A DNA stretch of 64,000 nucleotides from Geosiphon pyriformis uo1 (GCA_016748015.1 JAAOMT010000607.1:62001-126000), one strand, 5' to 3'. Positions 4,285 through 54,932 are shown, counted from the stretch's first letter. Made by a program: numbers and translations. The notes: a model not told the origin generated them from the sequence alone.

Positions 4285-5600
4285 TTAAATGTTAACTGGT
4301 TCTGAGGGGCATATTCCCATCATGTAACCAAAATAAGGTCCGAAATGGTCATTACCCTCATGAGTCCTAACTAATCGACCGTCTTTTCTTCTGCGTTTAT
4401 TACGATTTTTATTACAATCCTTGCATATATAAAAAAATTCAGATCGCATTAAATTTTAAAAATAACGTTTGACTTTAGAAAATTTTCTCACCGGATGTTC
4501 ATTTAATGTTCCAACCTCAAAACATTTATAAACAGACGGAAACTTTATTGGTGGTTCTAAGTCAGAAGTTTTTGTGAAAAGAGGTGAGCATTCACATTGA
4601 TCTTGAAATGGAATCCAGTATTCGCCACTCAATTGAAAATAGTCAATTGCTTTTCCTTCAAAGCTATAACCATATTTTGGAACACCTGGGGTATAATCAT
4701 CCCGGTACGTGACACGATAAAGCGTAATTTGAGTTGCTACAAATTCGGCAAATTTCATATTTCCCATTTGTGGCTGGCCAAATGTGACAACTGTTGGTTT
4801 AACTGCATATTTAGAAGCAAATTCTAATGCTGCGCATACTGCTATTACTAAAAATTTTCAAAATCAAAATAATTTAGAATATGCATATGCAAAAATTTTT
4901 AATATTATAAATACAACTTACTACCCGCTCGCCCAAAACCGGTGAATGTAAAGTAATCCTTATTAACATTGAAGTCAGATTTTAATTTCAGGTTTTCCAT
5001 CTTGGTCCAAAATTTTTTTCTACCCTTTAACCATACATTAAAATGACTTTGATCTACTAAAGCTCCTTCTATTCTAGGATAACCAATCAAGGTCGATTTT
5101 TGCATTTTCCAAAGAATGTATCCCCTTTCTTTAGATTTGAAAGTCAATATTATTTGTTGATACGCTCCTGTGATTGGATTTAAACTTTTTGACATCCCCA
5201 CTGGAATTTAAAATTAGCAAATATGAATTTTGATGCGTTTTCAACTTTTCAAAAAAATGGTTATTATTTTACCAAAAAAGCGCCCGTATAAGCGATCGCT
5301 CTCATCTTTAAGACATGCAGCTTGCATTGCATAGTAAGCATTATTAGCTAGCATCGCGAGGAGCCCTTGATCCTCTACTAAAACTTTTTGAAAGTGGAGG
5401 TCTACATCAATTTTGGACCTTTTTTGCTCTTCTGTAATGTTTAAGAAATTCCTTTTAGGGGGGCTGAGGTCTACATGTTTGATTGGAAGATATTCAGGAA
5501 AGTTCGCTTCTCGTTTTGTTTTAAATTTTGCTACGGAAACTATCACCATGTGAAATAGCTTCAAAATGAGTAACCACCAAAAGCTTGAAAGAATTTTCAT
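4285..5600 (-). CDS. Class-3 lipase-like protein L1, secreted, nucleophile Ser replaced (GFGRAG); ~365 aa
   Basis: Exons 5600-5273, 5200-4922, 4847-4492, 4419-4285 with GT-AG introns keep frame. Hydrophobic N-terminus, ANNAY..AAC, TFGQPQMGN, YRVTYRDD, EYWIP, DHFGPYFG..C are Lipase_3 landmarks. Confidence 0.88.
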
Positions 5601-8598
5601 TTTAAAACATGAATAAAAATGACTTTCTTAGATATTGAATTTATGGTTTCGAAAATCTATTCCCCTATATAGTTTACGTCTATTAATCAAAATAACAAAT
5701 ATTTGGTCAAATCGTAAATTTCCTAAACGTAATATACGTAATCTTTCAATCAAATTTTTGCTGACAAAGAAAAAGTAAATCAAAATAAGCACAGAATATT
5801 ATTTGGGAATATAGTATACCTTTAAGCATTTAAAAAAACCAATGCTTAAAATATGAAAAAACTTTCAGGTGTCAGATTTACTTTAATTGATCAGTTTTTA
5901 TTTTTACCTAACACATAAATATTTTCGAAGCATTACACATTCTTCTTCGGTTACAATTTTACGAGCTCAAGTTTCAGTGAATAGATATGAGTATTTCGAA
6001 ACAAAGAATGCTTAGCAGTGAAACTAATATAGACGACTTTGACAAATCTTTTGATCTATGTTTATTTATGCAATTTTTTTAACCAAATTTCAGCTGATAT
6101 AAACTCAATATATATCTTGATAGAATAATAATAATAATAATATATATTTAAATCGAAAAAGCTCTTTATGAACAAAATAACTTGAGTCTAATAAATTTAA
6201 ACCAAAGGTTCAAATAAGATAAAATGGTTAAATAATTTTGAATTAAAGACTTTAATGTAAAATTCTAATAGATAAATTCCTTTTTAAAAAAACTTATTAA
6301 CAAGGAATTGATATTTATGACCCCTAATCAATAAAAAACATTATTTTTCATTTTAATTTCAAAATGACATTTTATTTGTATTCTTATTTAAAGTAGCTTC
6401 TACAAAACACAAAAAATTCATTAACAAAAAAAATATTTTGATATAATGTATATAAAATTGAAGTGTATTAAAAATAGAGAATCAATTTATTTTTTCAAAG
6501 GCAATTAAATTTTAAAATTTGTAATCATTACTCAAACTTTATTCATGAATTTTTTTACTTTCATCTAATTTTAAATTCATATTTAGTTGTTTCACCCACT
6601 TTTGATATAAATTTTACCAAGATAGAAAGTAAGAGCTGAATAGAAAATAAATTTTTCAAGATTAAAAATTTCTTAAAACTGAATAATTTAACAGACTCTA
6701 AAATTTCAAACTTTTAATTTTTACTTCAACATATTCATCATCATTATATAATATTTATTTTTTCTAATAATTTGTGACTTAGTTATACCAGAAATTTCCA
6801 ATGCCTGTGGCAAAATTAAGGTCAACATATTACCAATGAGAAAATTATTTATGCTACTACTATAAAAGCTTTGATGCCCTTAATTATTATGCCATTTTTT
6901 TTTAAAAATGAGTTAATTATAATGAAAATTTTTTAAATATCAAATATTTATTATGTGCCGTTGCTTTGTGACAGTAATCAAAGGGCGTAATAATACCAAA
7001 TAACTTTTCATCAATTTGTGCTTAACCGAGAAAATGTGGTCAAGACTTGTTAGAGAAACACAAAATTGCGTGGGAAATTATTTTCCACAAGTTGATTTAA
7101 GATAAAAATATTGGGAATATGGAAGAGATTTCTTGTTTATATGCGGGTTTATTTGTTTTAATGAATCTTGTATTTTCTTAAACTTGTTTAATTTTCCCAA
7201 GCTTGTTTAATTTTCTCACAAAAATTAAATAGTGTATACCGCTCAATTTACAAAACAAGAGAATCATCGTGAACACAAAGCTTCCAAATGTAAGTTTCTA
7301 TTTCAATGAAGCAAATTTTTGTTTTCAACACGGAATAAACAGATCCGATAATAATTTCAAAGAATTGGGTGTTATACCTCAAATCATTTTGCTCTGTTTG
7401 CTATGAAAATTATTACCATTTATACGACGAAAATTTAATAGTTCATTTAATTTAATTAATTAACGGAAATCATTTAGTAAAGACAAGATCAATGTACTTA
7501 ATTTTTTTTCAAAATTAGTTGAATCTTTAACTATAAACAAACCAAGAAATTAATGAAAAATGTAAATAGAGTATTAATGAATGAAGTAGTAATATTAGCT
7601 TTTCTTTCAGTACTACTGGCAAAGTTTGTTAGAATAAAATTTACAAAGTCAATTTAACATTAATTTGTAAAATATTCAAAATTTGAAAGTTTCAAAAATT
7701 TTATTAATTTTATTTTTAAGGAGCTAGTCACAAGTAAGCAACATCAATTTATAAAAGCTAAACCCAAAACTCCTAGAAGATCGAATATGACATAAACTAT
7801 ATTAAATAGTTTTTTTATTTTTAAAAGTAATTGAAATAGTAAAAGTTTTCCTTTCCTCGTTCAAGTTGAAAATTTTCAATTTAATATGAAAAGTTTATTT
7901 TTTTCACAGTTTAAATGATATATGATAAGAGAATTCGATTGTTAATCTCTTCTTGACGCTGTGCTGATACCTCGGGCAATTAATTTCAAAAAATTCATTT
8001 GTTTTAATAATCACTGTTCAATAATACCAAAGTACTCTCAAATATATATTAATTTTTCTTCTTTAAGGAATCAATTTTATTTTTAGAAAGTTACCTTCTG
8101 AAAATACCTGAACGCGTTTAATATGTCATTTTTATTGTAAAATCATCAAAATTTGACTGGAAATCTAGACCCTTCTAAGCTATTATAGCTTTTTGAAGAC
8201 TCAGAAAAGTTTATTGAAATTTTTGTTAGCTTCAGCTAACAAAAATAAAATAAATCTTCGTAAAAAGATTTTATCATTTAAGAGATATTGTTTTCTATGT
8301 TTCTATCTCCTTAAATTTAAACATGCAAATCCTTTTCTATGGGTTAATATTTTGTTGTTTTTTTATAAACAAACGTATTCAAGGTTGGTTCCATTTCGTA
8401 GGTTTTTATTGAAATAGGACTAAGCCATTTTAACTAGATAAAGTGGGGAGATCGGTCGGAAAATTTATCCTATCTGATCATTGGCGCTTTGCCAATGTAT
8501 AATAAAATGATTAAAAACTCGATCATTAATTAAAAAAATTTTGAATTCGCAAAATTGTTTTTGGTAGTGACTCTTAACGATTATTTAGTTATATAAAA

Positions 8599-10166
8599 AT
8601 GAAGACGTTTTCAAACTTTATGTGTACACTCATTTTGATTATGGTCCACATGGTAACATTTGTGGTCCTATTTGAAATCAAAAGAGAAGTAAATTTCCAA
8701 AGATGACTTTGAAACAAAAATTTAACAAAACTAAAAACGAATCAAATATAAATTTTAATTGTCCCTACAAGAGTACAATTCGGGAAAACTTTCGTGAAGG
8801 GATAAGCCTCAATGCTGGAAAAAGGGATTTCTTAAATATTACTAAACAGCAAAAAAAGTCAAAGATTGTTGAAAACCCAAACTTGCGAAAGATTTTAGTG
8901 AAAGATCAAGAGCTTCTCGGGATGCTAGCTAATAATGCCTACTATGCAAGACAAGCTGCATGTCTTAACCATGAAAGTGAACGCTTATGGAGATTGTCTT
9001 TTAGTGAGCTCAATAAATAGTTTGGGAAACTTTCTTCTCGTTATACTTTAAATTTTAAATTTTTTAATTTATTTCAGTAGGGATGCCAAAAAGCCTAAAA
9101 CCTACTCCAGGATCATATTCGCAAGTAATATTGACTTTCAAATTTAAAGAACGAGTATATAATAATTGGAAAGGGCATCAATCAATCTCGATTCCTTATC
9201 CTAACGTAAAAGAGTCATTAGTAGATGAATATCATTTTAATATATGGTTATACTGTAAAGAAATATTTCGGGCCAAGATAGAAAACTTGAAATCAAATTC
9301 TGAATTTCATGTTAATAAGAAGTACTTTACATTCACTGGTTTTGGGAGAGCTGGTAGTAAGTTGTTAATTTTAATATTAAATATTGTTGCATTTTATTTG
9401 CTATGTATCCATTTTTTAAAAAAATATTTTCGATTTTAATCATCATTTTTTATTAATTGCAGTATATGCATATTTTAAATTATTTTCATTTTGAATTTTT
9501 TTTTTAGTAACGGCAGTATATGCAGCATTAGATTTTGCTTCTGAACATGCAGTTAAACCAACAGTTGTCACATTTGGCCAGCCAAAAATGGGAAATATGA
9601 AATTTGTCGAATTTGTAACAACTCAAATTACGCTTTATCGTGTCACGTATCGAGATGATTTTACTCCAAGTGTTCCAACATATGGTTATGATATTGATAC
9701 AAAAGCAATTGACTATTCTCAATTGAGTGGCGAATACTGGATTCCATTTCAAGATCAATGTGAATGCGCACCTCTTTTCACAAAAACCTCTAACTTAGAA
9801 CCACCAATAAAGTTTCCGTCTGTTTATAAATGTTTTGAGGTTGGAACGTTGAATGTAAATCCGGTACGTGAATTTTAGGATTTAAGAAATTTTCTAAAGT
9901 CAAAAGTATTTGAGCGGTAGTATTAAATTTAATGAAATTTCAATTTTTTTTATATCTGCAAGAATTGTAATGAAGGTCGGACTAAACGCAGAAGAAAAGA
10001 AAATCGAGGAATGAAGAAAAAGGATACTGATGACCATTTCGGACCTTATTTTGGCTATATGATGGGAAAATGCCCCTCTGAATCAGTTGAAAAATCTAGT
10101 GATATGGGAATAGTTACTACTCACCATGTTGAGAGACACTTTTATATGAATACCCCTTTAAACTGA
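8599..10166 (+). CDS. Class-3 lipase-like protein L2, close inverted paralog of L1, Ser-less (GFGRAG); ~386 aa
   Basis: Exons 8599-8688, 8772-9003, 9078-9356, 9508-9863, 9963-10166. Two internal exons have the same lengths as in L1 (279, 356 nt). The first intron (8689-8771, GTAAAT..CAAG, phase 0) is needed to avoid a stop at 8704. Confidence 0.82.
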
Positions 10167-10971: not shown

Positions 10972-12492
10972 TTAAATTTTTAAATAATTAAATTTCTTGA
11001 AATTCTTAGCTACTTGCAAAGCGTCTTTTGTTATAAATTTTGCATTTTCAATATTGAGATACTCAACAAAACCATATTCGAATATCACCTCTAAATGTTC
11101 ATCTGAAATACATGTCGAATTTCTAAAGTCCAAATTGACAATTCTGGCTTCAGTTTCCATCAAAAAGCTTTGAAGAGCCATTGGGGAAAATTGTAAATCT
11201 GTGTCCAATCGGAAATGAGTTACGGTCGAAGGTAGACAGTGCCACAATTGAGAAACAAAATTATCGATATCATCTTCGTCACAATTTGATTTAATATGAA
11301 GCGAAAGGGTTTTAAGGTTATTCCAAATTTCAATAACATGAAGTATTTGTGGTATTTGATCAATTGTTAATAATGCCTCAAAAGTTGTAAGGTTCTGATT
11401 GTTTGAACCGTATTCTTGGAGGAATGCCATGGTTTCTGTTGGAATTAAGCCGCAAAGGTTGAGTTCGTTTAATGCAGAACTGGAATGAAGCATCAGCAAA
11501 CTGATAATATTCGGTGAGATAAAAGAATTGTGGAATTCAATTGCTTTCAAATTGTTAAATGATTCAACTGGTAACTGGGGATAGAAATTCGATAAAGGTA
11601 CTGAACAGCTTCTGAGAACAACTCTTTCTAAATCTTTATGTACCGAGATGACTTCAACAAATAAATAGTGTTCAGCCAAATCAATCTCGTTCAATTCGAG
11701 ATGCATTAAGGTGCTGGAATGAAGCTGAAGAACGTCGAAAAATCCTCGTAAATCTCTCGTCGATTCTCCTTTGTTATATTTTTGGATTTTGATAAATTTC
11801 AAAGATAATTGAGCAGCAATTAGAACAATTAAATGATCGATTCTTTCAAAAACCGCTTTATCTGGTGATGTATTTAAATTTGGATTCAACTCGATATCGA
11901 TTTCTGAAATATTTGTACATAGTCGCGAAGCTGAATAAAGAATTTCTCCTGGATATTCACCATTCAATCCTATTCTTCTTAAATTGGCTAAAGATTTCCT
12001 TGCACCAGGCCATTCAAAAAAATTCCAATCCATATCTCCCCAATGATAATCATCCGAATTAATAACGTTAAAATCCAATTCTAAATCTAAAATTTTCCCA
12101 TCACCATTAACTATGTTGATGGCGAATGTATGTAAAAGTCGGGGAGAAGTTCGACGATGTGGAACAGGGGAACACCAATCATTTATCGAATCGAATAAGC
12201 GCTGAAGTGAAAAATATTTGATGTAGCTAAGATAGGGAAATGTGGGAGAATTAAAATCTCTTTCTGACTTGATAACGCCATATTTTATTTGTTCCACAAT
12301 TGGGAGACAAGTTATTAGAGTGTTGATTAAGGAGCCTGGAAGAGAAGCGGAAAACGGTTTACTCCATAAAAAAGTAATTCCTTGTCGACACCAATCTTTA
12401 TTTACTAATATGCAAGAGTGTAAAGATTTTCTATCCTCTGGTAAAAATTGGAATATCTTTTCGATGCATGAATTTGGAAGTTTAGAAGCCAT
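10972..12492 (-). CDS. F-box protein with C-terminal RNI-like/LRR region, 506 aa, single exon
   Basis: N-terminal LPNSCIEKIFQFL..SLHSCILVNKDWCR..I.FLWSKPF F-box, followed by FPYLSYIK and repeated LxxLxL units. Long open ORF in very AT-rich DNA. Confidence 0.9.
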   Translation of the reverse strand: MASKLPNSCIEKIFQFLPEDRKSLHSCILVNKDWCRQGITFLWSKPFSASLPGSLINTLITCLPIVEQIKYGVIKSERDFNSPTFPYLSYIKYFSLQRLFDSINDWCSPVPHRRTSPRLLHTFAINIVNGDGKILDLELDFNVINSDDYHWGDMDWNFFEWPGARKSLANLRRIGLNGEYPGEILYSASRLCTNISEIDIELNPNLNTSPDKAVFERIDHLIVLIAAQLSLKFIKIQKYNKGESTRDLRGFFDVLQLHSSTLMHLELNEIDLAEHYLFVEVISVHKDLERVVLRSCSVPLSNFYPQLPVESFNNLKAIEFHNSFISPNIISLLMLHSSSALNELNLCGLIPTETMAFLQEYGSNNQNLTTFEALLTIDQIPQILHVIEIWNNLKTLSLHIKSNCDEDDIDNFVSQLWHCLPSTVTHFRLDTDLQFSPMALQSFLMETEARIVNLDFRNSTCISDEHLEVIFEYGFVEYLNIENAKFITKDALQVAKNFKKFNYLKI

Positions 12493-13054: not shown

Positions 13055-13056
<2 letters not shown>

Positions 13057-13088: not shown

Positions 13089-13091
<3 letters not shown>

Positions 13092-13834: not shown

Positions 13835-15392
13835 TCAAATTATAATATCTTCCATTCCTTTATCACATTTACCCATTGTTACACCGAAATAAGGGCCTTG
13901 ATTGGCCAAGGAACCTTTAGTATACCGCTGACCGCGATTACAATACTGCAAAGTAAAAAATTAAAATGACAATAAGAATTATTCAAATTTCAATAAAAAA
14001 ATTCGAATTAAAAAAATTAGAGTTATTACCGGATTTTCACCAGGTAACTTAAATACATCGCATCGAATCAGCTGATAACCATCTAATTTTTGATCATAAC
14101 AATCACATGGTATCTTAGAGATCCAATACTCAAAATTTGCATGAAGATATTTTCTTTTTTCTTTTGACATCACTGGAAACTGGGAGACATAGTCATTTGT
14201 GTGCGTCACTCGAGAAATAAAAGAATTTTCATTGAGAAATGATGCGAAACGTTCATCCCCAACTCGAGGCTGACCATACGTATAAATCGCCATTAAATCA
14301 CCAAATGGTTTTGCTAGACCTTGATGACCGCCTTGCTTATAAAATAGTAGTTCATTCAATTTGTATAAGGCTCCTGCTAAGGTAGCGTATGCTAAATTAA
14401 AAATTAAAAACACATATTAAAATTCAAACTTTTTGAAATTAAAAAACGAAAGCTTTTAAAAATTTTATAGATTTTATAAATTTCGAAAAATGCTTACCAC
14501 CACCTATACCATGCCCAGTAAAGGTAACCTTCACAGCTTGTGCGTATAGCTGTTTATGTACAACTTCCCTGGCAATCATCACAAGCTTCTCTATTTTCTC
14601 AAAAAGTTTCCCTTCCTCTATCATTGCTTTTACATGTTTATACCATACACGATCAACAAAAAAACTTTTAAATTTTTGTCTAAGAATTTCCGGAATCTTA
14701 TACTTGATTAAAACTGAATCTCTTTTTTTCCATTCCTTTAGTGATAAATTTCGACCACGAAAATATACAATAACGCTATAATTTTCTGTTCCTTCGTATC
14801 CAAGTATTGGATCACGTTTTATCAAAAAAAGGTCAACTAATTATGCAAATAAATTGAAAAAATTTTAATTCATAAAAAAAATATACAAAAATCGAGGGCA
14901 AGAAAACTACCAATGATCCCCTTCTTAACAAAAAGGCCGACACTATTTCTTGGTGAGCAATAAGCCATATTTGCAAATTTTGCCATATCTCTTAAATATT
15001 GACTTGTAGTGGATGTATTTCTTTGGGAGAATATTGGTTTCAAAATTTTAGATCGAGCCTCCAACAGGGTTTGATTTGTTACTGGATTGAATGAATTCGA
15101 TTTTATAGTATTATTTGATTGAGTTTCTTTTAAATCATTGCCTAGAAAATATTCATCGGAAAAGAAAGAAAAGACAAATTGTGATTAAAATTTAAATCCA
15201 AGTTTTTTATTTTTGAATGAACTATAGAATTTCTTGAATTTATTTACTTTTTTTAGGAATTTCTGTGATTTGAAAGATCTCAAAGGCCGTATTTTTGAGG
15301 ATTCTTTTATCGAGAGATAAAGAGAAAAGTCTAAAGAGAATTATTATAATAAAGATAAGGCCTAAATTTTTTTGGTATAGAATATCTTTCAT
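13835..15392 (-). CDS. Class-3 lipase-like protein L3, lacking both catalytic Ser (GHGIGG) and His (LANQGPYFG); ~395 aa
   Basis: Exons 15392-15248, 15141-14911, 14836-14498, 14391-14030, 13945-13835 keep frame. Signal-like LGLIFIIIILFRLFSLS, then FANMAYC, VIVYFRG, YTYGQPRVGD, RVTHTND, EYWI, GPYFG..C. Confidence 0.87.
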
Positions 15393-18227: not shown

Positions 18228-19815
18228 ATGATGTCCTGGTTAACCATTTCCTTAACAGTACTTTACTCATCCCTATTCACATTATCCTCGATAATAACAA
18301 ATACAAGTGCTTCTCCAATATCAAACGCTGCGCTAATATACGATGGAAATAGTTCAACTCGATTGGACATGAACAATACAAATACCTTAGACGAAGCTCA
18401 AGATGCGGACTATAGTATAATTGGTGCAAAATGGTTATTTGGAATTTCATTCGCAATAATGCAATTAAATGCCATCGGCTCAATATACGTTATTTATCGA
18501 ACATTTTCAAAATGGTATGGACAAGATGGATATCGAAAAACTTTATCAATGGCTTTGAGAGTTCCTTTTTATATTGCGATATCGGATTTTTGTCTGTACA
18601 TAGCTCATATGTTTAATCAAAGCTATACCGTATTGAATGAGACAACATGGCCTGGTTTTAGTTGCAAAGTTGTTGGTGGTACAGTTTTTTACTTGGTTGC
18701 TGTTAACATGACATTAGGTGAGTTTGAAACTGATTTCAATATTATAAAATGTGTGAGACGATTAGTTTATTAAAAACTAATCTCTCTGATTCAATTTTCA
18801 AATCTATTTCAATAGTTGGTTTCATAGCACTAGCAACTTATCTTCGAGGTAAAAATTATAACCATTTATTCTTCTTAATTGTTTGTTTTTTATAATAAAA
18901 CAATCCATTCTTATTAATCATCAATTTTATCTTTCACAACCTTTTAGTCTGTCGTCGAATTTTAATTGATCTAGGCCGTTTTGATTGCAACCTATTTCTA
19001 ATAGTCCTTGGATTCCCATTGATCCTAACATTGTGCAGTATCCCATCTTTTGGCCCAAGCACTTATTGGTATGTGCCAAAACAATTCATATCATTTTTTT
19101 TCCGAGTTATTTAGTTGAATAATTAATGTTTAAATTTACTCACCGAATTTTTTATAGGTGTTACACAAATAAAACGAATCACATAATGCCCCTGATAACT
19201 TTAATTCTAAATTTCTCGATCATCGCCCTCAACATATTTTGTTACTTTTTCACACTACGAGAGATTAATACGTCCGGTAATCGCTTAGCTAATGTTCGGT
19301 CTAAAGATAATCCTGGCCTAGCTGCAAATATTGAGCAAAGAGTCACAAGAAAAGTAGCTGCTTATGTGCTAATATTTACAATTCAATGGACGCCTGCGAT
19401 GCCATATGTAGTTGCGAGTGTTGTTAGTAACGTAAGTAGAATAAATGATCTTTTTGTTTAATTATTATTCATTCTGACAGGAATTTTCATCAAATAACGT
19501 TTGATTCTTCTAATTATTTGTTGATAGTCAACACCATCAGTAGCACTATACTTACTATGTGACGTTGCCATAAATTTGGGCGGAATCGGTAACTGCATAC
19601 AATATGTTCTAAACGAAGGTTGGAAACATCGAAACGAGGAATCGACAGATGATACTGAAATTTCATCAAAAAAAATGAATTCAATCAACTCTCGACAAAA
19701 AAATCAGATTGGTACAATTTCCAGTTTTTCAGCAATTCAGACCAGATCCGATGAATATGATTTACAGGACTGGAATTTACCCTCCCCACCACCACTAGTC
19801 GTAGAGCATTATTGA
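18228..19815 (+). CDS. Seven-transmembrane GPCR-like receptor (Git3/cAMP-receptor-like); ~401 aa
   Basis: Exons 18228-18717, 18816-18848, 18948-19068, 19158-19431, 19528-19815 join in frame. N-terminal signal with N-glycosylation sites, LRVPFYIAISD, CKVVG, GPSTYWC, RKVAAYVLIFTIQWTP, NLGGIGNCIQY; seven hydrophobic segments. Confidence 0.85.
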
Positions 19816-20626: not shown

Positions 20627-20629
<3 letters not shown>

Positions 20630-22028
20630 TGGTAAAAGAACTAAAATATCTAGATTACCATTTGAAAGATAATTATTATTAATACTTGAGCTTATAAGTT
20701 TTATTGAATTTAATAAATCAGATAATAAATAATATTTAAAAAAAAAATTAACCTTTTATTTATTACAAAATTTTTCTATAATAAAACATTCAAAATAAGC
20801 AATTATATTTTACAATAAATTAGTAAAACCCATGTAATTTTAAAAACTTTAAATCTTTTTTAGTTTAAAAAATTTCTTGATATGAAATAAAAATCTCTTT
20901 TTTGTATCATCTAAAAAGTTTAAAAATAAAAAGTTTCTAAAAAGGTTTTAAAAATAAAAGCAAAAAAAAATTATTTCTTATCATCTCTTTATCACAGGTG
21001 TAAAGAGTACTATATTAAATATACAAAAGACAAGAACAAAACTTGAAATTTTGCAATTAAAGTATAAATAATATTGGGCAACGTTATTGTAATTTCCAAG
21101 ACACCACATCTTTGAAATTTTTTTTGAAAATAATAGCAAAAGATTCAGCCTCACAAAGATGTTCACGAGAGTATATACAAACAAGAAGGCTGTCAATTTC
21201 AACATTCACGGCAGGCACAAAAAAAAGGCTGCAGACAAATATTGGTGATCAAAAAAAAGTGTCAAAACGGTAGGTTGATTTGATAATGATAAGTGTAGAA
21301 GAAATTTTGAGACAATTATTAAAGAAAAGATATCGTAAGAAACTTTTAATTCTCGAAAATTCTGGAATAATTTTTCTTTAAGTTGATAAATGATTAGAAG
21401 GGGTCCAAGAAAAGCAAAAGTTTCACTAGTATGTAAGCATCAAACTTGAGCGCCAAAAACTTTTTTAGGAAAATCATCACGAGTATTGAATGCCCGAAAA
21501 ATTCTACGCCCAGAATTATGGCATTTAAGGTGTGACAAAGGCAAAAAACTGAAACAATTGCCAATCTGATACCACAACAGATGAAGTGCGCCAGAATTTT
21601 TCTAGGCGATAAAAATTCTTTGACAAATGCGGTGTTCAAAGAACTGGTGATCACCGTGAACCATCTTGCAAGATACCATTAAAAAATGTTACCTAAAATA
21701 AATGTATAATGATTGGTCGATTCTAGATTTAGAGCTTGAGTCAAATAAAATAGAAGCCAGTTATTATTATATATTCAAAATTTGATGACTTAAATATTTT
21801 CTATTTAGCTAATCTTTCAAAAGAATAAATATATATATGCTTTAATTTTTTTCTATTTAATCAAATCATTGGCAAGTATATATATAAAACTGAAGGAAAA
21901 ACACTAAAATCCTACCAAACTTTTTAATAAGGAAATATTCAATTTCATGCGATTGAATTTTTAAATAAAAAATTAGAGACTTTTTATTAGTCGGAATGAT
22001 TCGAAAAGTTTTTTAATCAACCATCTCG

Positions 22029-23636
22029 TTAATCATATTTAAGCAAACTATTAGCGGGTCTAGATAGAAGCCTTGGGTAAATTCCATCCATATTTAAAGC
22101 GCAATTCCCCATTTCTATTCCAAAATATAGACCATTATGAGCCATAACACTTTCTGGTTCAGAGTAAATTTGTGCAGCATTACATTCCTAGAAATTATCA
22201 AAAAAGAAAATTTTATAAGTTGAGAGGCAAAAAAAAAAGAAAAGAGAAATTTCTCTATTTCAAATTTCAAATTATTACAGGATGCTCCGCAGTCCTATCC
22301 CAAAATTCATCAAGATTCATCAAAAAATTATCACATTGATAAAGCGGGTAATATGATGCACCATTGCCTACGCAATCACAAACCGGCCAGGCAATCCAAT
22401 GTTCAACTTCATGATGCTGAAATTTAACTCCATTCTGATCCAATACTGGATAATGAGGGAAAAAATCATTGGTATGTGTCACTCGGTAGATAGTGTTCAT
22501 GAGGAATTGATTGATCATTTTTGCAAACGCTGAATCTCCAATACGTGGTTGTCCAAACGTAATTGCCGAGATCACAGCCGACCCCCAGATAGTTTCCATT
22601 CCGTACTTCTCCATATCATAGATTTTTAGCAATTTAAACTGCAAGGCAGCAAGTAATGCATATACTATTTTCAAAAATTAATGAAAAGAAAAATATTGAA
22701 GGAGATATATTATTCATACGCAGTTGAAAAATTTTTAGATTTGAAAATTTTTTAATTTGAGTAAAACAAACCTCCTCCAATAGAATGACCTACAAACTTT
22801 ACATTTATACTTTTCTCATAGTAATCAATTCCATTGCTTCTTTTAAAAACAACATCCATTAAAGATTTGATTTTTAGAATTATTTTCTGAAATGCTGGAT
22901 CAAAGTTAACTTTCCAGGATGATTCAACCAATGGGACGTCGGGCTTGGTCCAATTTAGAAGATATTTGTACGGTTTCATTTTATAAATTCCATTTTGTAG
23001 TTCTTTTAATGTAATCATTGGCGCCCAAAAGGTTACAATTATATCATATCCATCGGGACCACGATCAATAAAGGCATGTGCTACCCCATTAATTTTATTA
23101 TATAATAAAATATTTGATTAGTTGATGATGAAGGAGTTTATTAGATCTTTGTAAGAAAAAAAAGAAAAAAGCTTCCAACCTTTAAAACCACCAAAGTGGA
23201 GCATTAACTTTTTTTTTTTTAAGCAATAAGCCAAATTTGCAAACCTGGCCATACGGGCTAAATCCTTATGAAAATATGGTAGTTCAGTTTTGGGTGGGTA
23301 TGGAGTTCTACCTGTCGAGTCCACCATAGCTCTTTTCATTTTCAGTTGGCCATAATGTTGTGTTAAATTTTGATGAAAAATATTTGATTGATCCAATATG
23401 ATCGACTGAACCGAGTTATTTGGAAGTTGACCAATCAAACTAAAATTTAAATGATTTTTTGACTTTATTAAATTTTGAAGCTGATTATCATTCCAGCTTA
23501 TTGTATGAGAATGTAAAAAAAATAGTCCAACATTAAATGTGCAAGAAATTAAGAATATGAAAATAGGAAAAATGATGAAAATTTTTTTTATGTAAAGATC
23601 GTTATTTTTTAATTTATGAAATTGAATTTGAAACAT
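22029..23636 (-). CDS. Class-3 lipase L4, only paralog with full Ser-Asp-His triad and intact frame; ~436 aa
   Basis: Exons 23636-23180, 23080-22772, 22664-22279, 22187-22029. GHSIGG, ITFGQPRIGD, RVTHTND, HHEVEHWI, AHNGLYFG..C; N-terminal hydrophobic anchor and KR site. Start codon choice is uncertain. Confidence 0.88.
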
Positions 23637-24725
23637 ATTGACACAGAAACTTTCAAACTCATTACCTTTACTGAATATATTTATAAACCGGCAAAAGTAG
23701 AAATAAAAAACGAGCTCATTTTTGCAACCAATTTTAATTCGACAGATTTGGATTTTGTATTTGTTGATGAGTAATAAATTGCTTTTCAATTAAGACCGAC
23801 ACTATTCTAAATATATCATCCCGGTCAGCAGAATTTATGGTTGGGACCTCCGGATAAGTAACTATTAGCAAAAAAGATATTTTAAAAGATATGCATAAAA
23901 TTAATATTGGTAATATCGGAAAAATTAATTTAGTCTCGTGATAAGGGAGACAGTCATCAGTTGATTGTTTTTATCATTTTTTTTTTTTTTTTTTTGGTGT
24001 AGGATTAAAAAAAAGTCACTAGGAATATGTGAAACCAAATTATTGTTAAATATTAAATCATCAAGTATACAAAAAATTCTAATATTTATGTTATTATCAA
24101 GATTTTACTTTGAAGATAATCTATGGATGTTTCGCTAATTTGATAAGATAAAATAAGACTTTTAAATTATCTGTTTTTTCAACAAAAAATTTTTTGAAAT
24201 TTGATTTTATTCCTTGGAAAGAAGTTATAGTAATTTTGAATTCCTTTGCTCTAGTTATTTATTGTATACCATTTAAAAAAAGGGAAATCACGAAATTAAT
24301 AAAAAATTATTGAAGCAAAGAAAAAAAATTTTTAATCTCCCTTAGAAAGTTGAGATGACAATAACATGGAAAATTGAAGTGCAAATAGAGAGATTCAATT
24401 ATTTTTCAAAAATTTAATATAGCTATTTGTTTATCAAATAGTATTTACAATACGTTAGAAAATTTCCAAGTTTTCCCAAATAATTATAAGACATTCTTTG
24501 AATTTCTAGCGTAAAAGTTTAAATATCACTTTTGGAATATGAAGCATGAACAATTCATGATTAGTATGTTTGAGTTTATTTTTTGTTAGAATTATTGCTT
24601 TATAAGCATTAAATTTTTTTCCAAAATTTTTTTTCAAGTTTTTTTGGTTCATATTTAATTTTATAACATCTCAAAAGCTTTAAGTTTGAATAATTTTCTT
24701 TTGTTTTTATTTCTCTCTAACTTAC

Positions 24726-24835
24726 TTATGGACATATATTCATAATATAACCAAAATATGGCCCAAAGTGATCCGAAATGTTCGCGGATCGTCTTCCACT
24801 TGCATAACGTCTGTGTTTTGCCTCTTGATTGCATT

Positions 24836-24871
<36 letters not shown>

Positions 24872-26173: not shown

Positions 26174-26436
26174 TTTTATTTAACAATAAATAGAATCAAA
26201 TTCAATGTTTTAGATGACAATTTTCTAAATGAATTTTAAGGACCTTTTTCGTTTTATATCTATATAAAGGGAAGTTTTTAATCTGGCAAAACTTCTTAAA
26301 TGTATCAACTTCATTTTGACGATTTAACCAATTTTCTAAATTGAAAATTTTTAGAGGTAAGATTTACCCATTTTTATATTGGATATCAATGTCATAGTTA
26401 TTTAAACTACAAGGTTTTAAAAATTTGGAAAAATTG

Positions 26437-26577
<141 letters not shown>

Positions 26578-32998: not shown

Positions 32999-33515
32999 NN
33001 NNNNNNNNNNNNNNNNNNNNNNNNNNNNNNNNNNNNNNNNNNNNNNNNNNNNNNNNNNNNNNNNNNNNNNNNNNNNNNNNNNNNNNNNNNNNNNNNNNNN
33101 NNNNNNNNNNNNNNNNNNNNNNNNNNNNNNNNNNNNNNNNNNNNNNNNNNNNNNNNNNNNNNNNNNNNNNNNNNNNNNNNNNNNNNNNNNNNNNNNNNNN
33201 NNNNNNNNNNNNNNNNNNNNNNNNNNNNNNNNNNNNNNNNNNNNNNNNNNNNNNNNNNNNNNNNNNNNNNNNNNNNNNNNNNNNNNNNNNNNNNNNNNNN
33301 NNNNNNNNNNNNNNNNNNNNNNNNNNNNNNNNNNNNNNNNNNNNNNNNNNNNNNNNNNNNNNNNNNNNNNNNNNNNNNNNNNNNNNNNNNNNNNNNNNNN
33401 NNNNNNNNNNNNNNNNNNNNNNNNNNNNNNNNNNNNNNNNNNNNNNNNNNNNNNNNNNNNNNNNNNNNNNNNNNNNNNNNNNNNNNNNNNNNNNNNNNNN
33501 NNNNNNNNNNNNNNN
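32999..33515. other. Assembly gap (N run)
   Basis: N bases. Confidence 1.
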
Positions 33516-33909: not shown

Positions 33910-34016
33910 NNNNNNNNNNNNNNNNNNNNNNNNNNNNNNNNNNNNNNNNNNNNNNNNNNNNNNNNNNNNNNNNNNNNNNNNNNNNNNNNNNNNNNNNNNN
34001 NNNNNNNNNNNNNNNN
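33910..34016. other. Assembly gap (N run)
   Basis: N bases. Confidence 1.
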
Positions 34017-36807: not shown

Positions 36808-37317
36808 TCAAGCTATTGAACTGGCTGCATGGGATCTATCCTCAATTGGTTTAATCTTCAAATTAATCCCAACTCGAGCATTTAACGGTGCACGCCAAGT
36901 TCCAAATATATTTGATTTATTTTGCCCAGGTTTTCCGTACAGCGGAGATTGATGATCATGTAAATTTTTTTCAATTGTATAGATCACAGTAAACATGAGC
37001 TTTTGTAAGGTGCTTGGGTCACCTGATTCGCAACACAAATTAACAGCTTCAACAACACGTTGAAGTGTTGGGTCGTTGTTAATATCAGAATGTTTTACAA
37101 ACGCGTAGAGCTGAGGTTGCGATAATTTGGGAGAAGTTTGAGTTGTCATAGGCGATGCAGGTGGCGTCATAGAAGATGTTGGTTGTAGTGATTCAAAATC
37201 AAATAAATTTGAGTCTCTTGTGGGTGAAAAAGGTGGAGATGAACATGTAGTTGAACTTGTTGAAGAATTGGAAGATTCAGAGTTATTTATGGATTGAATT
37301 GATAAAAGTGGTGCCAT
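36808..37317 (-). CDS. Hypothetical protein, 169 aa: Ser/Thr/Pro-rich N-terminal half and ~100-aa globular C-terminal half
   Basis: ATG in AAAATGG context, GC content above background, uninterrupted 510-nt ORF. No family recognised. Confidence 0.65.
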   Translation of the reverse strand: MAPLLSIQSINNSESSNSSTSSTTCSSPPFSPTRDSNLFDFESLQPTSSMTPPASPMTTQTSPKLSQPQLYAFVKHSDINNDPTLQRVVEAVNLCCESGDPSTLQKLMFTVIYTIEKNLHDHQSPLYGKPGQNKSNIFGTWRAPLNARVGINLKIKPIEDRSHAASSIA

Positions 37318-43540: not shown

Positions 43541-45761
43541 TAGTCAATAACTACTTAAGTGGGCCGTTTTTAACTCAAGGCCGGTCTTCGACTATACGAT
43601 TACTGGCTTCTGACAGATCTAAACTCTGTCACAGACGCTTCGAGTGCCCCAAAACCCCCAATAATTCTGTATCCCGAGGATAGCCGGCCATTTCTAGCTT
43701 CCGATAGAACCAAACTTGGATACTTTTTTCTTACAGAACTATTCAGTGAGGCACGAAAAATATCGTTTTATAATCCACCATCTAGAAAATTAAATGGAGG
43801 TGGAGAAAAGCCCCAGGTGAAAAAAGCTATATTATTACAAATGGTGTGATTATCGGAATTATGTTAGTATGACATAGGTTTCTATTAAGGAGTCATTAAT
43901 ATATCATCATAATACTAATATTTTATTAATTTTAAAAAAACAAAAAATATATATTGAAGCTAACCGACGAAAACCACTTTGCAAAGTTTCATAGGATCTC
44001 AAAAAGTTTTTGGTCTTTGGGTATAGAAGGAAGATTTTTATTCATTAAATAGAATTCAAAAGTAAAGTAAGGCAACTAAGAGAACTTGATATTTAAGAAA
44101 ATACAAAAGCTAGGAATATATACGAATAAATTACTATTACGTTTTGAATGTAATTCTTCTTTATTAAAAGATATGAATTTTAATTTACCATTTTAGAATA
44201 TAAATGAATCTTCATATCATTATTCCATTAAATAGAAAATACGTTCGATGAGAAGAAGAATAATAAGAAGAAGATGAAGAAGAATAACAAATCTTCTTGA
44301 AAAATGCTTAATCATTCTAGAAATTAAACAATTATTGAAAAAGTTAATCTTGATTTCATTGATTAAACCAGATTATTAAAAATGGTTTAGAATTAGAAAG
44401 TTAAAAAACTTTGTCATATGAAAATTTCCTTCTTTAAAATTCTCCTGGACATCTTAAGCAGTTGAGTTAATTAAAATATTAATTCATTTAGATGGTAACG
44501 TCATTTTCTCATTCAATTGAAGCAATAATAAAATAATGAAAATAATGAATAAGTGGTTAGGCCTGAGAAATTTACAAACGGGATTTTTATATTTTTACCT
44601 TTTCCCTACTTAAAGGAGTTTTATGTAACAAAATTTTCCGCGGCTTTACATATTATTGAAAATTCTAAATCCTAGGATTACTATACACCTAGTTTTCGAC
44701 CTTGGTCATTTATTCTAGAGAGCCTTCAAAGAATTTTAAGATTCTTCTAGCATCTCAAATCAAAAATTTGATAATAATTGCAATAAAATAAAAATTTCAA
44801 ATTGCTAAAAGAAATTTTCTTAAAGCTTCTCAACCTCTTAAAGTGAATTCTTTGAAATCTAAAAACAATAAATTTAACTTCAAACAAATGATGAAGTTTG
44901 AAATTAACCAGTTTAAAGAAAATTTTCATTATTCAACTCAATAATTAATGTGTCATTTAATTAATCAGAAAGGCTGTCTGTAAAAAGGTTCCATTTGTAG
45001 TTGTCAAAATAAATCCAAAGCTTTTTAGTTGAATTTTAACAAGATTTCCCTTCGATTATAATTTATACTAATGCAGAAATACTAAAATTCCTTCCTCTTA
45101 CAAAAATTCCCACATATTATACTTATATGGTGATCAATTTTCTTAAATAGAGTCGAACGAAATTTATTATTCGCTTCGGCAAAGAATCATTGTCTTCATT
45201 CAATCCCATCGGATGAGTCCTTTAAAATATGACATGCACATTATCTCAGATTTGAATGTTCAACAAACAAATCCGTTGAAGCTAAACCTTTTCATGAATC
45301 GTGATACAAACGCTCTAAAGTTCTTTATTTAATTTTAACCCGATTCCCTATCGTATCTGATATTTAAATACCAACGGCTGATGCCTAGTGAACTTTCAAA
45401 TATTAACAGTTGCCAGCTAAAAGTTATTTGTGGGTCCGGTTGACATGAATCAAAGATAAATGATTGATCCTCGAATAATACAAAAGATAAAAGATAAGCT
45501 ATGATGTGTCTTTGTGACACATCTTTTTACTTTATTTAAAAAAAAAAAACAACAAGACAATCAGATATCATGTCGTTCGCTTAGTAGCACGTTTATCCAG
45601 AAAAGGTTACGATATGCACAATTGCCTAGTTTTTGTTCGTATAAACAAAAGTGTGACTTTTGTGTACATAGCCAAAAGCAACATAAGCCGGATTCTCAGT
45701 TGTGAAACTTTTCCGCTTGTTCGTTTGCATTTTTTTTTTGAAACGTGTCACATATCAAACT

Positions 45762-47120
45762 ATGTCCAAGTTTTCTCAAAATTCTGAAATCAATTTCACT
45801 CAAATTATTCCCAATCTTACTGATCAAGAAGAAAGATTAATGCCGATGGAATGTGAAATTTCAACCTGGTCGATACAAGAGAACTTTTTAACCAGTCCTG
45901 TCACTTTGTCGAATTTAACCTCCATTCAAAATCATGATATTCCTATGTTATGTCTTAAGAATGATCTGATTAATGAACAAATTTTAGATAGTGATTTTGG
46001 AAGGCAATTGTTAGAAGTCTTCGAAAACGCAGTCAGACGTGGTGAAAAACCATTTTACACAAAACTTATAAATGAATTTATTAAAAAAACGCCATACACT
46101 TCTGAAAAAATATTCAAGCAATTATGTGTTCATGCAAATAAAAAAAGATTCGGCTCTCTATTAGGATGCTTTTATCAACATGGAATTGGGACCTCGGTGG
46201 ATTTCAAAAAAGCCTTCAATCAATACAAAGTTTCAGCGCAACTTGGCGATTCACTCGCTCAGGCTTTTCTTGGCAGATGTTTTGAAGACGGTGAAGGGTG
46301 TGTCAAAGATGAGACTGAGGCATGTCGTTGGTATAAATTATCCGCAGAAAATGGGTGTGGTCGAGGGCAATGTGCTTTTGGTGTATGTTTATTTGAAGGA
46401 ATGGGTGTTTCTAAAGACGAAAACAGAGGTTTTGAGTTTGTTCAGAAATCTGCAGAAGGTGGTCACGCTGTTGGGCAGTGTAATCTTGCTATTTCTTATG
46501 AAGAAGGAAGTGGGACAACGGAAAATAAAGAAATGGCATTCTATTGGTTCGAAAGGTCAGCCTTAAACGAAAACACCTCGGGGCAATATAATCTTGGTAA
46601 GTCTCGTTGATTAAAAATTTCATTTCTAATTTCATCAATTTCAAATTTATTCTGTATGACAGGAAGATGTTATGAACATGGAATTGGGGTACCTATTGAT
46701 TTAAAAAAAGCTTTTGAATGCTATCTAAGTTCGGCCAAGGGTGAAAACCCAGAAGCACAATGCATGGCAGGATATTGTCATGATCTTGGGATTGGAACCA
46801 AAGAAGATAAAGAAAAGGCTTTTTGGTGGTATGAGAAATCTGCACAGAATGGGGAAATCATTGGACAATACAATTTTGCCAACTTCTACTTTAATGGAAC
46901 TGCTACACTTGTGAACAAAAAGAGAGCTTTCTACTGGTATTCAAAATCCGCCAATACAGGATATGACTTTTCTCAATATCGTCTTGGGTATGCTCACGAA
47001 TTTGGGGCTGGTGCATTAAAAGATTTTCATAAAGCCATCGAGTGGTACCGGAAAGCCGCTGGGCAAAAAAATTTACTCGCCAAAAATGCTATACCCTCAA
47101 TTTTTAACATGATTGACTGA
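45762..47120 (+). CDS. Sel1-like repeat protein, ~430 aa, no kinase domain
   Basis: Exons 45762-46596 and 46663-47120 (phase-1 GTAAGT..CAG intron). About 8 repeats of AQxxLGxCYxxGxGxxxDxxKAFxWYxxSAxxG. Confidence 0.92.
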
Positions 47121-49800: not shown

Positions 49801-50291
49801 CGAAATTTTTGTATTATTAACCAAATAAAGATAAAAATTCGCGTAATTATTTACATTTATATATTTTATAACTCAAAAAATTCCCTATATAAAAGACCCT
49901 AACCTATACACAAGAGCTTTCCCCGAGTTTACACCAATTTTTATGAGCGTTTAGTATAATGGACCTGGATGCTCATGCAGTGAAGATTTTTCAAAAATAA
50001 AGAAAACTCGATAATTTGCTGATGATTACAAGAGCAATGTGATTGTGTAGCAACTTCTGAGTTTGATTATTTCGACATTAAATCTCAGATATATTACCCA
50101 ATAGTATTTAAATATTTACCGAACCAAAGGAAATTTTGATTAGTGCTATAGTTCGATTGAGAAGTGTGAGGCTTTGCATCAATGGTGATCCCAATCTGTT
50201 TCTGCACTGATTCTGTGATTTTAACATAGGTTCCATAGACAATATATAGTAGACCAATAGTTAATCAAAATTGAACAAAGTAAAACATTCA

Positions 50292-50810
50292 ATGATAACA
50301 TTTCCATTTTCGAAATTTTCAAAATCTCCAACTCAATCTAAGGCTAATTCACCAAGGGAATCACCTGTAATAACATTCGCAGCCCATTTTCCAGATATCA
50401 ACGCGATTTATGGTGTCCAATTTGAGCATTATCTTCCCTTGACCTCGAACTACATCATTTTTTCACCAAATCGTTCCCTCTCCGATCTTATATTTTCAAT
50501 TAATTTTTATCCTCAAAATTCTTCCGAATGGGTAAATTTCGACGAAACTTTACGAAAATTTAGTGGTTTGCCACCCAAAGACGCGGTTAATAATACAACC
50601 GTTTTTATAAACGTTGAAGATTTTTTACAAGAAAGGAATAACACGAGTTCAATTATGCATATATTAGTATCTAATGTGCCAAGAGGAAAAATTGAGGTTC
50701 CTGAGAAGGTTATTGCGGTTTTGGTGGCATTTATAGTTATGATATTATTGGGGGTCTTCGTTTCTTTTGTGTTTGTCATGTTAAAAAAGTGGCTTGATCG
50801 TTCCAATTGA
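50292..50810 (+). CDS. Single cadherin-like (CADG/He_PIG, Axl2-type) domain protein with C-terminal TM helix
   Basis: SEWVNFDETLRKFSGLPP matches the CADG consensus WLxFDxxTxxFSGxP. Several N-x-S/T sites; TM VIAVLVAFIVMILLGVFVSFVFVML followed by KK. The 5' end may be incomplete (no signal peptide in the ORF). Confidence 0.7.
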   Translation: MITFPFSKFSKSPTQSKANSPRESPVITFAAHFPDINAIYGVQFEHYLPLTSNYIIFSPNRSLSDLIFSINFYPQNSSEWVNFDETLRKFSGLPPKDAVNNTTVFINVEDFLQERNNTSSIMHILVSNVPRGKIEVPEKVIAVLVAFIVMILLGVFVSFVFVMLKKWLDRSN

Positions 50811-51399: not shown

Positions 51400-51876
51400 T
51401 CAATCTTCCGTCGGTTTAACATCCATCTGATAAAAACTAGCTGTTTGTGTAATCATCTCAGGCTCCATAGGTAGTGCTGGTGGTTTTCGTCGTCGTTGTC
51501 GCTGTTGCCTTCGTCTAGTTCTCAATATTTGCCGTCTTCGTCTGGTTAGCTGTCTACGGCGACGCCTTAACTGACTACGACGTCTCTTTCTTTCGTTTAT
51601 TCGTTCTTGATCTTGCGTAGTTTTCACTGAACTCAAAATTTGTGATTGAATCACATAAGTCGGTCCAAGAAAGCGATCATGAGAGGAAAATTTTTCTAGT
51701 AATAGTTCTCGTGAAAAATAAGTCAAAGTTGGCAAATATTCTTTTTCGCTTAAGGCTTTAGGATAAAATTTTGCCAAAGTTTGATCATTAGTGCGCGCTG
51801 TTGCAAAGAAATATTCATTTAGAATCAATGGAAACAAGTAAAGCAATAAGCCCAATTTGAAGATGCGGTAAGTCAT
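51400..51876 (-). CDS. Small secreted protein with protamine-like poly-Arg segment, 158 aa
   Basis: Signal-like MTYRIFKLGLLLYLFPLILNEYFFATA. 21 Arg and 2 Lys in 36 residues (51484-51591), encoded by all six Arg codons. Confidence 0.72.
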   Translation of the reverse strand: MTYRIFKLGLLLYLFPLILNEYFFATARTNDQTLAKFYPKALSEKEYLPTLTYFSRELLLEKFSSHDRFLGPTYVIQSQILSSVKTTQDQERINERKRRRSQLRRRRRQLTRRRRQILRTRRRQQRQRRRKPPALPMEPEMITQTASFYQMDVKPTED

Positions 51877-53531: not shown

Positions 53532-54932
53532 TCATGAAGAGCATTTTCCAATTGTGAACCCAAAATATGGCCCTAGATGATCATTGAACTTTCTTATAGG
53601 CCTCTTCGTGATGGCTCGTCTTGATTTCCATTGTAAATTGCATTTCTTGATATGATATAAAAAAAGTAAATATTTAGCTTATTAACTAGCTAAAATGAAA
53701 CCTTCATATACATACTTTATTCTCAGATAGCCCTTGTTTTGGAAAACATTTTAATACTGTAGGGTATATCTGAGGTTTATTTTCGAAATAATCAGATTCA
53801 GAAGTTGCTACACAATCACATAGTTTTTGTAATGGAATCCAGTATTCGGGAAAAAATTGAATGTACGGATCGCTTTCTAAAGCGTTTCTTGGATAGCTTG
53901 GGACCCAATCATCAGCATGTGTGACACGATATATGCTTATTTTGTTGTTAACAAATAAGATAAATTTTACGTTTCCTATTCTTGGTTGCCCGAATGTTAT
54001 CACATATGGCATAGTATTATGCTTAATTGCAAATGCGAGAGCAGCAAATACTGCATAAACTAGAGGAAATTTATAAAGAGTTAAATAATTTTGTATTATT
54101 ACATTTTCTTTAAAAGGAAATATGAAAATGTTTTGATATAATAGAAAAAAAATTGTTCAACATACTACCACCATTACCAAATCCAACAAACGCAAAGTTA
54201 TCTTTAGCAAGATGAAAAATTTTATCTTTCTCGATTTCTTTCATTCTTTCCCAAAAAGCTTTTTGTTGACGCATCCATCTCTTATAAAAATATTGAACCA
54301 CTTTGCGACCTTTCAAATCAACTCCCTCGATATACTCTACACTGAGCCATTGATACTGTACCCATAGGGCATAAGCAAGCTCCGGTGCTTCAAAAGTGAC
54401 CACATTCTTTATCAAGAGATTATTATTATCAACTGGTTTTAATTTTTTCGGCAAACTAACTTTTTTAAAATTTTTAAATCTAAATAAAAATTCAAAAAAT
54501 TAATCAAACTGCAACTGTTTTTAAGAGAACACTTTTACCGAAATGATTGCGAATGAGTTGCCATTTCAATTTCTTGTTTTGTTTTGTGCAAGATAGCTCA
54601 TGGACTTTAAAGGCCATGTAAGATAGGAACTGAAGAGTTTGAGTGTCAAATAAGACTTCTCTTTCTTTTTTCATCAAGCTTCTTTTTCCTTTATTTGATA
54701 TATTCATTGGTTGGTAGGTTTGGTAAGGAATCTTTTATTTTTTGGAAAAATAATAAAATTGAATTCTTTGAAATTGAAATTGTGACTCGATAAATTAAAT
54801 TTTCTTAATAACCTTTGTGTGAAATTTGTAATCATGATTTCCCAGGAAATATTGCTCATCGATTCTTATCCGGGCGAAAATAATAATTAGCCATGAAAAA
54901 CATATTGTAAAAGTAAATCTCAAAAAGTTCAT
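53532..54932 (-). CDS. Class-3 lipase-like protein L7, Ser-less (GFGNGG), closest to L6; ~354 aa
   Basis: Exons 54932-54813, 54731-54539, 54459-54166, 54059-53716, 53645-53532 keep frame. Signal-like FTFTICFSWLIIIFA, ITFGQPRIGN, RVTHADD, EYWIP, DHLGPYFG..C. Confidence 0.87.

Follow-up and report, generated by a model that had tools for sequence, protein, structure and literature searches.

Seven lipase-like genes and their nucleophile elbows

The stretch of DNA analysed here (the window) comprises 64,000 nucleotides (nt) of the genome of the fungus Geosiphon pyriformis, with a GC content of 28% and three runs of N, and carries an array of seven genes, L1 to L7, which are homologues of class 3 lipases (PF01764). 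To our knowledge, no fungus other than Geosiphon pyriformis is known to harbour a cyanobacterium (Nostoc) within its cells. The original prediction proposed that in this array the catalytically dead copies are the ones preserved and that they form a candidate system of secreted pseudo-lipases. Translation confirmed the nucleophile elbows of all seven genes at the predicted coordinates and strands (Table 1), Gly being read at the nucleophile position in L1, L2, L3, L5 and L7 and Ser in L4 and L6. The triad Asp is encoded in 7/7 genes and the triad His in 6/7, with an Asn at this position in L3, while the His-bearing exon of L6 is cut off by a frame break. L4 is the sole copy of the window whose frame is intact and encodes Ser as well as Asp and His.

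Each gene consists of four coding exons, and removal of three GT-AG introns at conserved positions (phases 1, 1 and 0) yields one open frame per gene, broken in L6 at the end of exon 3; the five Ser-less genes thus have the open spliced frames attributed to them. Exon 1 encodes the N-terminal part and ends after an A-x-x-A-Y-C-like helix, exon 2 ends with the elbow, intron 2 following directly after its last Gly, exon 3 carries T-F-G-Q-P-x-x-G-N, R-V-T-x-x-x-D and E-Y-W-I, and the short last exon encodes C-N and H-x-G-P-Y-F-G-x-x-x-G-x-C. The spliced models were used in frame checks and in local BLAST comparisons with the window and the fetched proteins only, and products of the public annotation served as whole-protein references for L3 (P0007), L4 (P0009), L5 (P0001) and, approximately, L7 (P0002, 93% identical to the spliced L7 model). 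Exon 3 alone of each of the seven copies scored 25.9-44.6 bits against PF01764 (gathering cut-off 22), while the exon-2 halves alone stayed below the cut-off, the N-terminal half being too divergent. The public proteins scored 61 (L3), 68 (L4), 36 (L5) and 54 (L7) bits. A look-up of contigs encoding the L3 protein returned no entry.

One of the two Ser-bearing genes had been described as frameshifted, which is the case for L6. In this gene, 28 nt separate the conserved AAATGT from the conserved exon-3 donor, compared with 36 nt in L7, and an in-frame TGA (31413-31415) is found just ahead of the conserved donor at 31417. Exon 4 with its His would therefore be retained only through the use of a weak donor at 31383. 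Two assembly gaps (32999-33515 and 33910-34016) lie between L6, which ends at 31627, and the next gene, at a distance of at least 1.4 kb from L6. They are outside all models and crossed by none, and the possibility of a gene being broken by an assembly gap was consequently rejected.

Glycine at the nucleophile position across the genome

To place the array within its family, the Geosiphon pyriformis genome (128 Mb, 792 contigs) was searched with PF01764, which gave at least 171 exon matches, 150 of 783 candidates being scored, and with a profile of the seven exon-2 peptides. This profile matched 140 places, among them a cluster on contig C592 and three further copies that lie on the contig of the window, shortly before its start. 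In a set of 1.84 billion representative proteins, it retrieved 36 clusters, nearly all of which read G-[HF]-G-x-G-G and keep H-x-G-P-Y-F-G; all 20 of the 20 looked up were from Geosiphon. With a full-length profile, 45 Geosiphon proteins scored at least 135 bits, and the next best match, a nematode Lipase_3 protein, 79 bits. Judged by these sequence comparisons, the family is restricted to Geosiphon, all close relatives found coming from this fungus. A description of it was not found in the literature searched on lipase expansion in Glomeromycota, Geosiphon lipases and Ser-less lipase pseudoenzymes, a search that did not cover the Geosiphon genome paper.

The elbow, Asp and His were then read with exon hidden Markov models (HMMs) in 87 copies, namely the seven of the window and 80 further loci. 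The nucleophile position was occupied by Gly in 73 cases (88%), by Ser in 7 and by Ala, Asp and Glu in one each. All four Gly codons are used (GGT 29, GGA 22, GGG 16, GGC 6), and the Ser codons are AGY in six copies and TCT in one. The rare variants belong to L068 (GHDEGG), L076 (GHEIGG) and L040 (GHAIGG); Asp can be the nucleophile in some alpha/beta hydrolases. In the same set, whose mean pairwise identity is 33%, the triad Asp was present in 83/83 copies and the His in 71/77 (92%), which places both among the most conserved columns, a retention on which the original prediction had not remarked. The elbow geometry G-x-G-x-G-G is conserved too, as are the H-x-G-P-Y-F-G loop over its full length and the R-V-T-x-x-D strand.

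Genome counts independent of the profile used to choose these loci were obtained with patterns combining the elbow codons and a phase-1 donor, each with control patterns. They gave 313 matches for GHGxGG (control 11), 44 for GFGx[GA]G (control 17) and 47 for GHSxGG (control 2), the latter made up of 38 with AGY (control 1) and 9 with TCN (control 1). Once the controls are subtracted, about 370 elbows are left, about 88% of them without Ser, with about 45 GHSxGG. Several GHSxGG places coincide with strong N-terminal PF01764 matches, and these are therefore canonical lipases. Gly at the nucleophile position is the old norm of a Geosiphon-only family of about 370 genes. The Ser-less paralogs of the window are real, but the trait is not peculiar to this array. 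Errors of sequencing or assembly were rejected as the cause of the missing Ser codons, Gly being found in hundreds of independent copies and with four codons.

The copies were placed in a rapidly computed maximum-likelihood tree with non-Geosiphon lipases as root and without the canonical Geosiphon lipases, in which about half of the inner branches have a support below 80. On this tree the seven Ser copies need six changes, each sitting singly within Gly clades. L6 (AGT) is sister to L7 (GGT) with 98% support, in a 17-member clade with 15 Gly copies, and 16 of the 20 members of the clade that includes L4 (TCT; clade support 99%) are Gly copies, L4 grouping loosely there with the single Ala (GCA) copy. 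Given this scatter of the Ser copies, parsimony favours an ancestral Gly and a later regain of Ser, and the Ser copies are therefore probably secondarily derived.

Selection was assessed by Nei-Gojobori counts on HMM match columns in 16 phylogenetically independent pairs. The ratio of nonsynonymous to synonymous differences per site (pN/pS) was below 1 in 16/16 pairs, with a pooled value of 0.52 (Fisher p 2e-55). Of the window genes, L2 with L005 gave a dN/dS of 0.45 (p 5e-5), L3 with L066, both carrying Asn at the His position, 0.57 (p 0.009), and L1 with its nearest paralogue L001 0.70 (p 0.17; synonymous divergence, dS, 0.10). For L6 and L7 the pN/pS was 0.46 and the Jukes-Cantor-corrected dN/dS 0.19 (p 2e-16), with synonymous sites near saturation. 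L058 with L076, in which the His is lost as well, gave 0.29. The His-less pairs L3/L066 and L058/L076 are still constrained, which argues against a dependence on His in those lineages at least. Older pairs were at 0.2-0.5 and the youngest at 0.6-0.8, the latter individually not significant, so that the constraint, although genuine, is of moderate strength and lowest among the most recent duplicates. The purifying selection expected of the Ser-less copies was thereby found. The statement that the dead copies are the preserved ones is borne out as far as the Ser-less copies are intact and under purifying selection; it is overstated in view of an intact and transcribed L4 and of about 45 GHSxGG elbows in the genome.

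Turnover of the family is visible as well, with stops in 6 of the top exon-2 profile matches. The GFGRAG subgroup of L1 and L2 extends upstream of the window (C667: 20254-20532, 53927-54205 and 60276-60554) and onto contig C592; copies of this subgroup (loci L001-L006, L010 and L034) are of very recent origin, with a dS of 0.07-0.15, and exon 2 is interrupted by stops in two of them. In the public annotation, the models P0003, P0020, P0023, P0025, P0027 and P0053 (550-1286 aa) show two or three lipase-like elbows, in one model together with a P450 domain (PF00067), and probably represent adjacent genes fused by annotation.

Fold, transcripts and N-termini

The structural assignment was examined on the AlphaFold model of L3, the single member modelled (predicted local distance difference test, pLDDT, 88; predicted template modelling score, pTM, 0.90). 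It shows a lipase fold, with a Z score of 22.9 and a root-mean-square deviation (rmsd) of 2.5 A over 222 residues against the Rhizopus lipase, and Z 21-23 with an rmsd of about 2.5 A over about 220 residues against fungal class 3 lipases and the feruloyl esterase FaeA, compared with about 16.5 for the lipase-like domain of EDS1. When the family member P0012 was aligned pairwise with the Thermomyces lanuginosus lipase in HMMER, its elbow Gly fell on Ser146 and its Asp on Asp201. The Ser/Thr of the oxyanion hole, after F-R-G, is variable across the family, a Trp of the lid-like helix is conserved in 53/77 copies, and 22 full-length proteins have six invariant Cys in common. The proteins end about 10-40 residues past the His loop. 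By profile and by fold the seven genes belong to PF01764, while the nucleophile Ser of a competent lipase is absent in five of them. PF01764 was the only Pfam domain found in eight family proteins, and an annotation based on domain counts would indeed miscall these genes as lipases, as had been foreseen.

Evidence of expression came from one public run, in which 40% of the words sampled from 22000-26200 were present and whose contigs were compared with the L4-L5 region. Although the run is labelled 'probably DNA', its contigs skip GT-AG introns, and it was therefore read as cDNA. The contigs match the window with 100% identity, and every interval that they skip has GT-AG ends on the minus strand. 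In L4 the intervals 22187-22277, 22665-22771 and 23081-23179 correspond to the three modelled introns, and the joints (22186|22278, 22664|22772, 23080|23180 and 23439|23666) show zero mismatches. The last of these reveals a further 5' intron of 226 nt (23440-23665), which removes the putative hydrophobic anchor. In L5 the contigs skip 25646-25713, the modelled intron 1 (joint 25645|25714), and a contig piece begins at 24940, the predicted end of exon 3. Thus, both L4, with Ser, Asp and His, and L5, with Gly, are transcribed and spliced, L4 being the best-covered transcript; the exon models were in this way verified for all three introns of L4 and for intron 1 of L5. An unspliced L5 contig (25617-25743, minus strand) keeping intron 1 was observed beside the spliced joint and could be intron retention or pre-mRNA.

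Hydrophobic N-terminal segments, described earlier as signal or anchor segments for the five Ser-less genes, are encoded upstream of 7/7 genes, and are contiguous with exon 1 in L1 (where the segment is signal-like), L5 and L6. Those of L2, L3 and L7 would have to be attached through one more 5' intron, GT-AG candidates being present in each case, while the segment of L4 lies within the 5' intron and the expressed L4 therefore starts at a downstream Met, as annotated. Across the family, 34/46 readable exon-1 frames had a hydrophobic N-terminus, compared with 33% of arbitrary control frames at the same loci. The six invariant Cys suggest the secretory pathway, and export of the family proteins is plausible on these sequence features. 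The N-terminal predictions for the family call for transcript support, as the L4 intron shows.

Besides the seven genes, the window contains two relics of lipase-like exons, and unrelated genes are found between the lipase-like copies, among them an F-box-like open reading frame (ORF) and ORFs with Sel1 repeats (Table 1). Sel1 expansions are typical of Glomeromycota.

Table 1. Lipase-like genes, relics and other features of the window, with elbows as read by translation (coordinates in nt from the start of the window)
Feature	Position	Strand	Coding exons	Elbow	Remarks
L1, Ser-less	4285-5600	-	5273-5600, 4922-5200, 4492-4847, 4285-4419	GFGRAG, 4923-4940	Asp and His kept
L2, Ser-less	8599-10166	+	8599-8688 (putative, requires intron 8689-8771), 8772-9003, 9078-9356, 9508-9863, 9963-10166	GFGRAG, 9338-9355	Asp and His kept
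F-box-like ORF	10972-12492	-			Intronless, 506 aa, between L2 and L3; weak match of 21.5 bits, under cut-off
L3 (G9A89_014335, P0007), without Ser and His	13835-15392	-	15248-15392 (putative), 14911-15141, 14498-14836, 14030-14391, 13835-13945	GHGIGG, 14499-14516	Asp kept, Asn at His position
ORF	18228-18773	+			158-181 aa class, no Pfam match
L4 (P0009), Ser-bearing	22029-23339	-	23180-23339, 22772-23080, 22279-22664, 22029-22187	GHSIGG, 22773-22790	Ser codon TCT
L5 (P0001), Ser-less	24726-26173	-	25714-26173, 25382-25645, 24940-25292, 24726-24836	GFGRAG, 25383-25400	Asp and His kept
A run	24837-24870				About 33 A, ends L5 intron 3 immediately before acceptor
ATT-type microsatellite	26367-26589				Long, upstream of L5; like the A run, passed over as a repeat in the comparison with the public run
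L6, Ser-bearing, broken	30192-31627	+	30192-30621, 30708-30992, 31081-31416; exon 4 31517-31627 out of frame	GHSFGG, 30974-30991	Ser codon AGT
ORF	36808-37317	-			158-181 aa class, no Pfam match
Sel1-repeat ORFs	45702-47120	+			Two neighbouring ORFs (100 and 126 bits), probably one gene
Relic, tail of L7-like exon 3	50026-50127	+			65% identity over 34 residues
ORF	50271-50810	+			158-181 aa class, no Pfam match
ORF	51400-51876	-			158-181 aa class, no Pfam match; called protamine-like in the original prediction, beside L7
L7 (about P0002), Ser-less	53532-54932	-	54813-54932 (putative), 54539-54731, 54166-54459, 53716-54059, 53532-53645	GFGNGG, 54167-54184	Gly codon GGT; Asp and His kept
Relic of lipase-like exon 3, degenerate	59392-59700	-			115 residues at 35% identity to L7; open segments all shorter than 35 aa
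Open segment	61152-61499	-			Adjoins third gap (61517-61847); resembles part of an unrelated enzyme gene

A candidate binding family, its alternatives and known systems

We consider, with moderate confidence, that the Gly copies form a non-catalytic and probably exported family of binding proteins. In the history proposed, the family ancestor would have swapped its nucleophile Ser for Gly, after which the family would have multiplied in tandem arrays by birth and death while keeping, under moderate purifying selection, the lipase core with the Asp, usually the His, the six invariant Cys and the Trp of the lid-like helix. With no nucleophile and an unconserved oxyanion Ser/Thr, these proteins most likely perform no hydrolysis; they would instead be disulfide-bonded proteins of the secretory pathway binding a hydrophobic ligand or a partner molecule. 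L1, L2, L5 and L7 would be typical members, and L3 would have additionally lost its His. L4 and L6 would have regained Ser secondarily, L6 through a single GGT-to-AGT step before the loss of its last exon.

Several observations weigh against this interpretation. The invariant Asp and a His kept in 92% of the copies exceed the obvious needs of a pure binder. The pN/pS values of 0.5-0.8 are only moderate and come from simple counting on alignable columns in a genome of 28% GC, and L1 compared with its closest paralogue is individually non-significant (0.70, p 0.17). The 80 additional loci were picked by their similarity to a profile built from this same window. The evidence of expression is limited to L4 and L5, the elbow Gly codon of L5 being outside the contig coverage. 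As for secretion, the frequent hydrophobic N-termini and the invariant Cys speak for this part of the original prediction, while the L4 transcript drops its hydrophobic N-terminus and many public models begin at an internal Met, without a signal peptide.

The retention of Asp and His is also a point in favour of the Gly copies still being enzymes, in which Asp-His would be the general base for water or for a hydroxyl group of the substrate (as a dyad or in a substrate-assisted manner) and the elbow Gly would make room for another substrate or reaction, for example of a transfer or lyase type. The conserved elbow geometry agrees with this, as does the use of four Gly codons, which indicates that Gly itself is maintained rather than Ser being merely absent. 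However, what is conserved is the complete H-x-G-P-Y-F-G loop together with the R-V-T-x-x-D strand, in keeping with a structural role, the His-less L3/L066 and L058/L076 are intact and constrained, and the oxyanion Ser/Thr position is unconserved. Moreover, removal of the nucleophile normally cuts the activity of alpha/beta hydrolases by several orders of magnitude. We therefore regard continued catalysis by the Gly copies as unlikely.

We give a similarly low likelihood to the idea that the Gly copies are a reservoir or partners of a minority of active lipases, with single-base switching between GGY and AGY and with the inactive copies serving as decoys or regulators or competing with the active ones for lipid surfaces or inhibitors. 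AGY, the Ser codon in six of the seven cases, is a single step away from GGY, the Ser copies are singly scattered in Gly clades (six changes for seven rows), L6 (AGT) is the sister of L7 (GGT), and the Ala copy (GCA) grouping with L4 (TCT) is a possible intermediate. A regained Ser would complete a triad whose Asp and His had been kept, and L4 is transcribed. On the other hand, the tree behind this scatter is a quick one with about half of its inner branches below 80, L6 regained its Ser and is nevertheless broken, and both the activity of regained-Ser copies and the roles as decoys or regulators are speculative.

That most Gly copies would be functionless by-products of rampant tandem duplication, as young or slowly decaying pseudogenes whose open frames reflect a recent origin, fits the broken L6, the two relics, the stops in six top exon-2 matches and the non-significant ratios of the youngest pairs, but is very improbable with copies at 33% identity keeping open exons, intron phases, six Cys, Asp and His, with a pooled pN/pS of 0.52 (p 2e-55) and older pairs at 0.2-0.5, and with L5 transcribed and spliced, which supplies the transcript expected of a Ser-less copy.

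Should the non-catalytic binding family be confirmed, a Geosiphon-only family of about 370 genes, nearly 90% of them Ser-less, would rank among the largest pseudoenzyme expansions from a hydrolase fold. Geosiphon is close to the arbuscular mycorrhizal fungi, which are unable to synthesise fatty acids of their own, and the family readily suggests itself as a candidate for the handling or recognition of lipids obtained from a partner. Its members are at present annotated by domain counts as lipases, or as 'hypothetical protein', which would inflate estimates of the lipolytic capacity of this lineage. As a more speculative extension, which we hold to be rather doubtful, the about 330 Gly-elbow look-alikes could be a fast-diversifying, Geosiphon-only system of recognition or capture for lipids or glycolipids, either those of the Nostoc endosymbiont or those of the symbiosome membrane, in a fungus reliant on its partner for fatty acids; the kept Asp-His scaffold would let single-base changes regenerate working lipases.

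Among known systems, the fungal class 3 lipases and FaeA (Thermomyces lanuginosus, Rhizomucor miehei, Rhizopus and Aspergillus niger) share with the Geosiphon family the same fold, Asp and His at the catalytic positions and the motif order, from the A-Y-C helix and the F-x-G strand through the elbow, T-F-G-x-P-R-x-G-N, R-V-T-H-x-x-D-x-V-P, E-Y-W-I and H-x-x-Y-F-G to the terminal Cys. The Geosiphon family differs from them by Gly for Ser in about 88% of the copies, by its unconserved oxyanion Ser/Thr and by hundreds of copies in one genome, with no close relatives found elsewhere.

The plant proteins EDS1, PAD4 and SAG101 are, like the candidate Geosiphon family, a case in which the class 3 lipase fold is reused without hydrolysis: SAG101 is without the triad, and the triad of EDS1 is dispensable for immunity. 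The structural match to EDS1 is however weaker than that to fungal lipases, and the Geosiphon proteins are single-domain, probably exported and disulfide-rich. They are not EDS1-family proteins, since the C-terminal EDS1-PAD4 (EP) helical domain of that family is missing. The EDS1 family has three members, whereas the Geosiphon family has hundreds. Finally, the cholinesterase-like adhesion molecules (neuroligins, glutactin and gliotactin) offer an analogy of principle only, as animal membrane proteins of another alpha/beta-hydrolase family (carboxylesterase type B). Neuroligin-type proteins are extracellular, disulfide-bonded alpha/beta hydrolases devoted to binding only, and in neuroligin the nucleophile Ser is likewise replaced by Gly.

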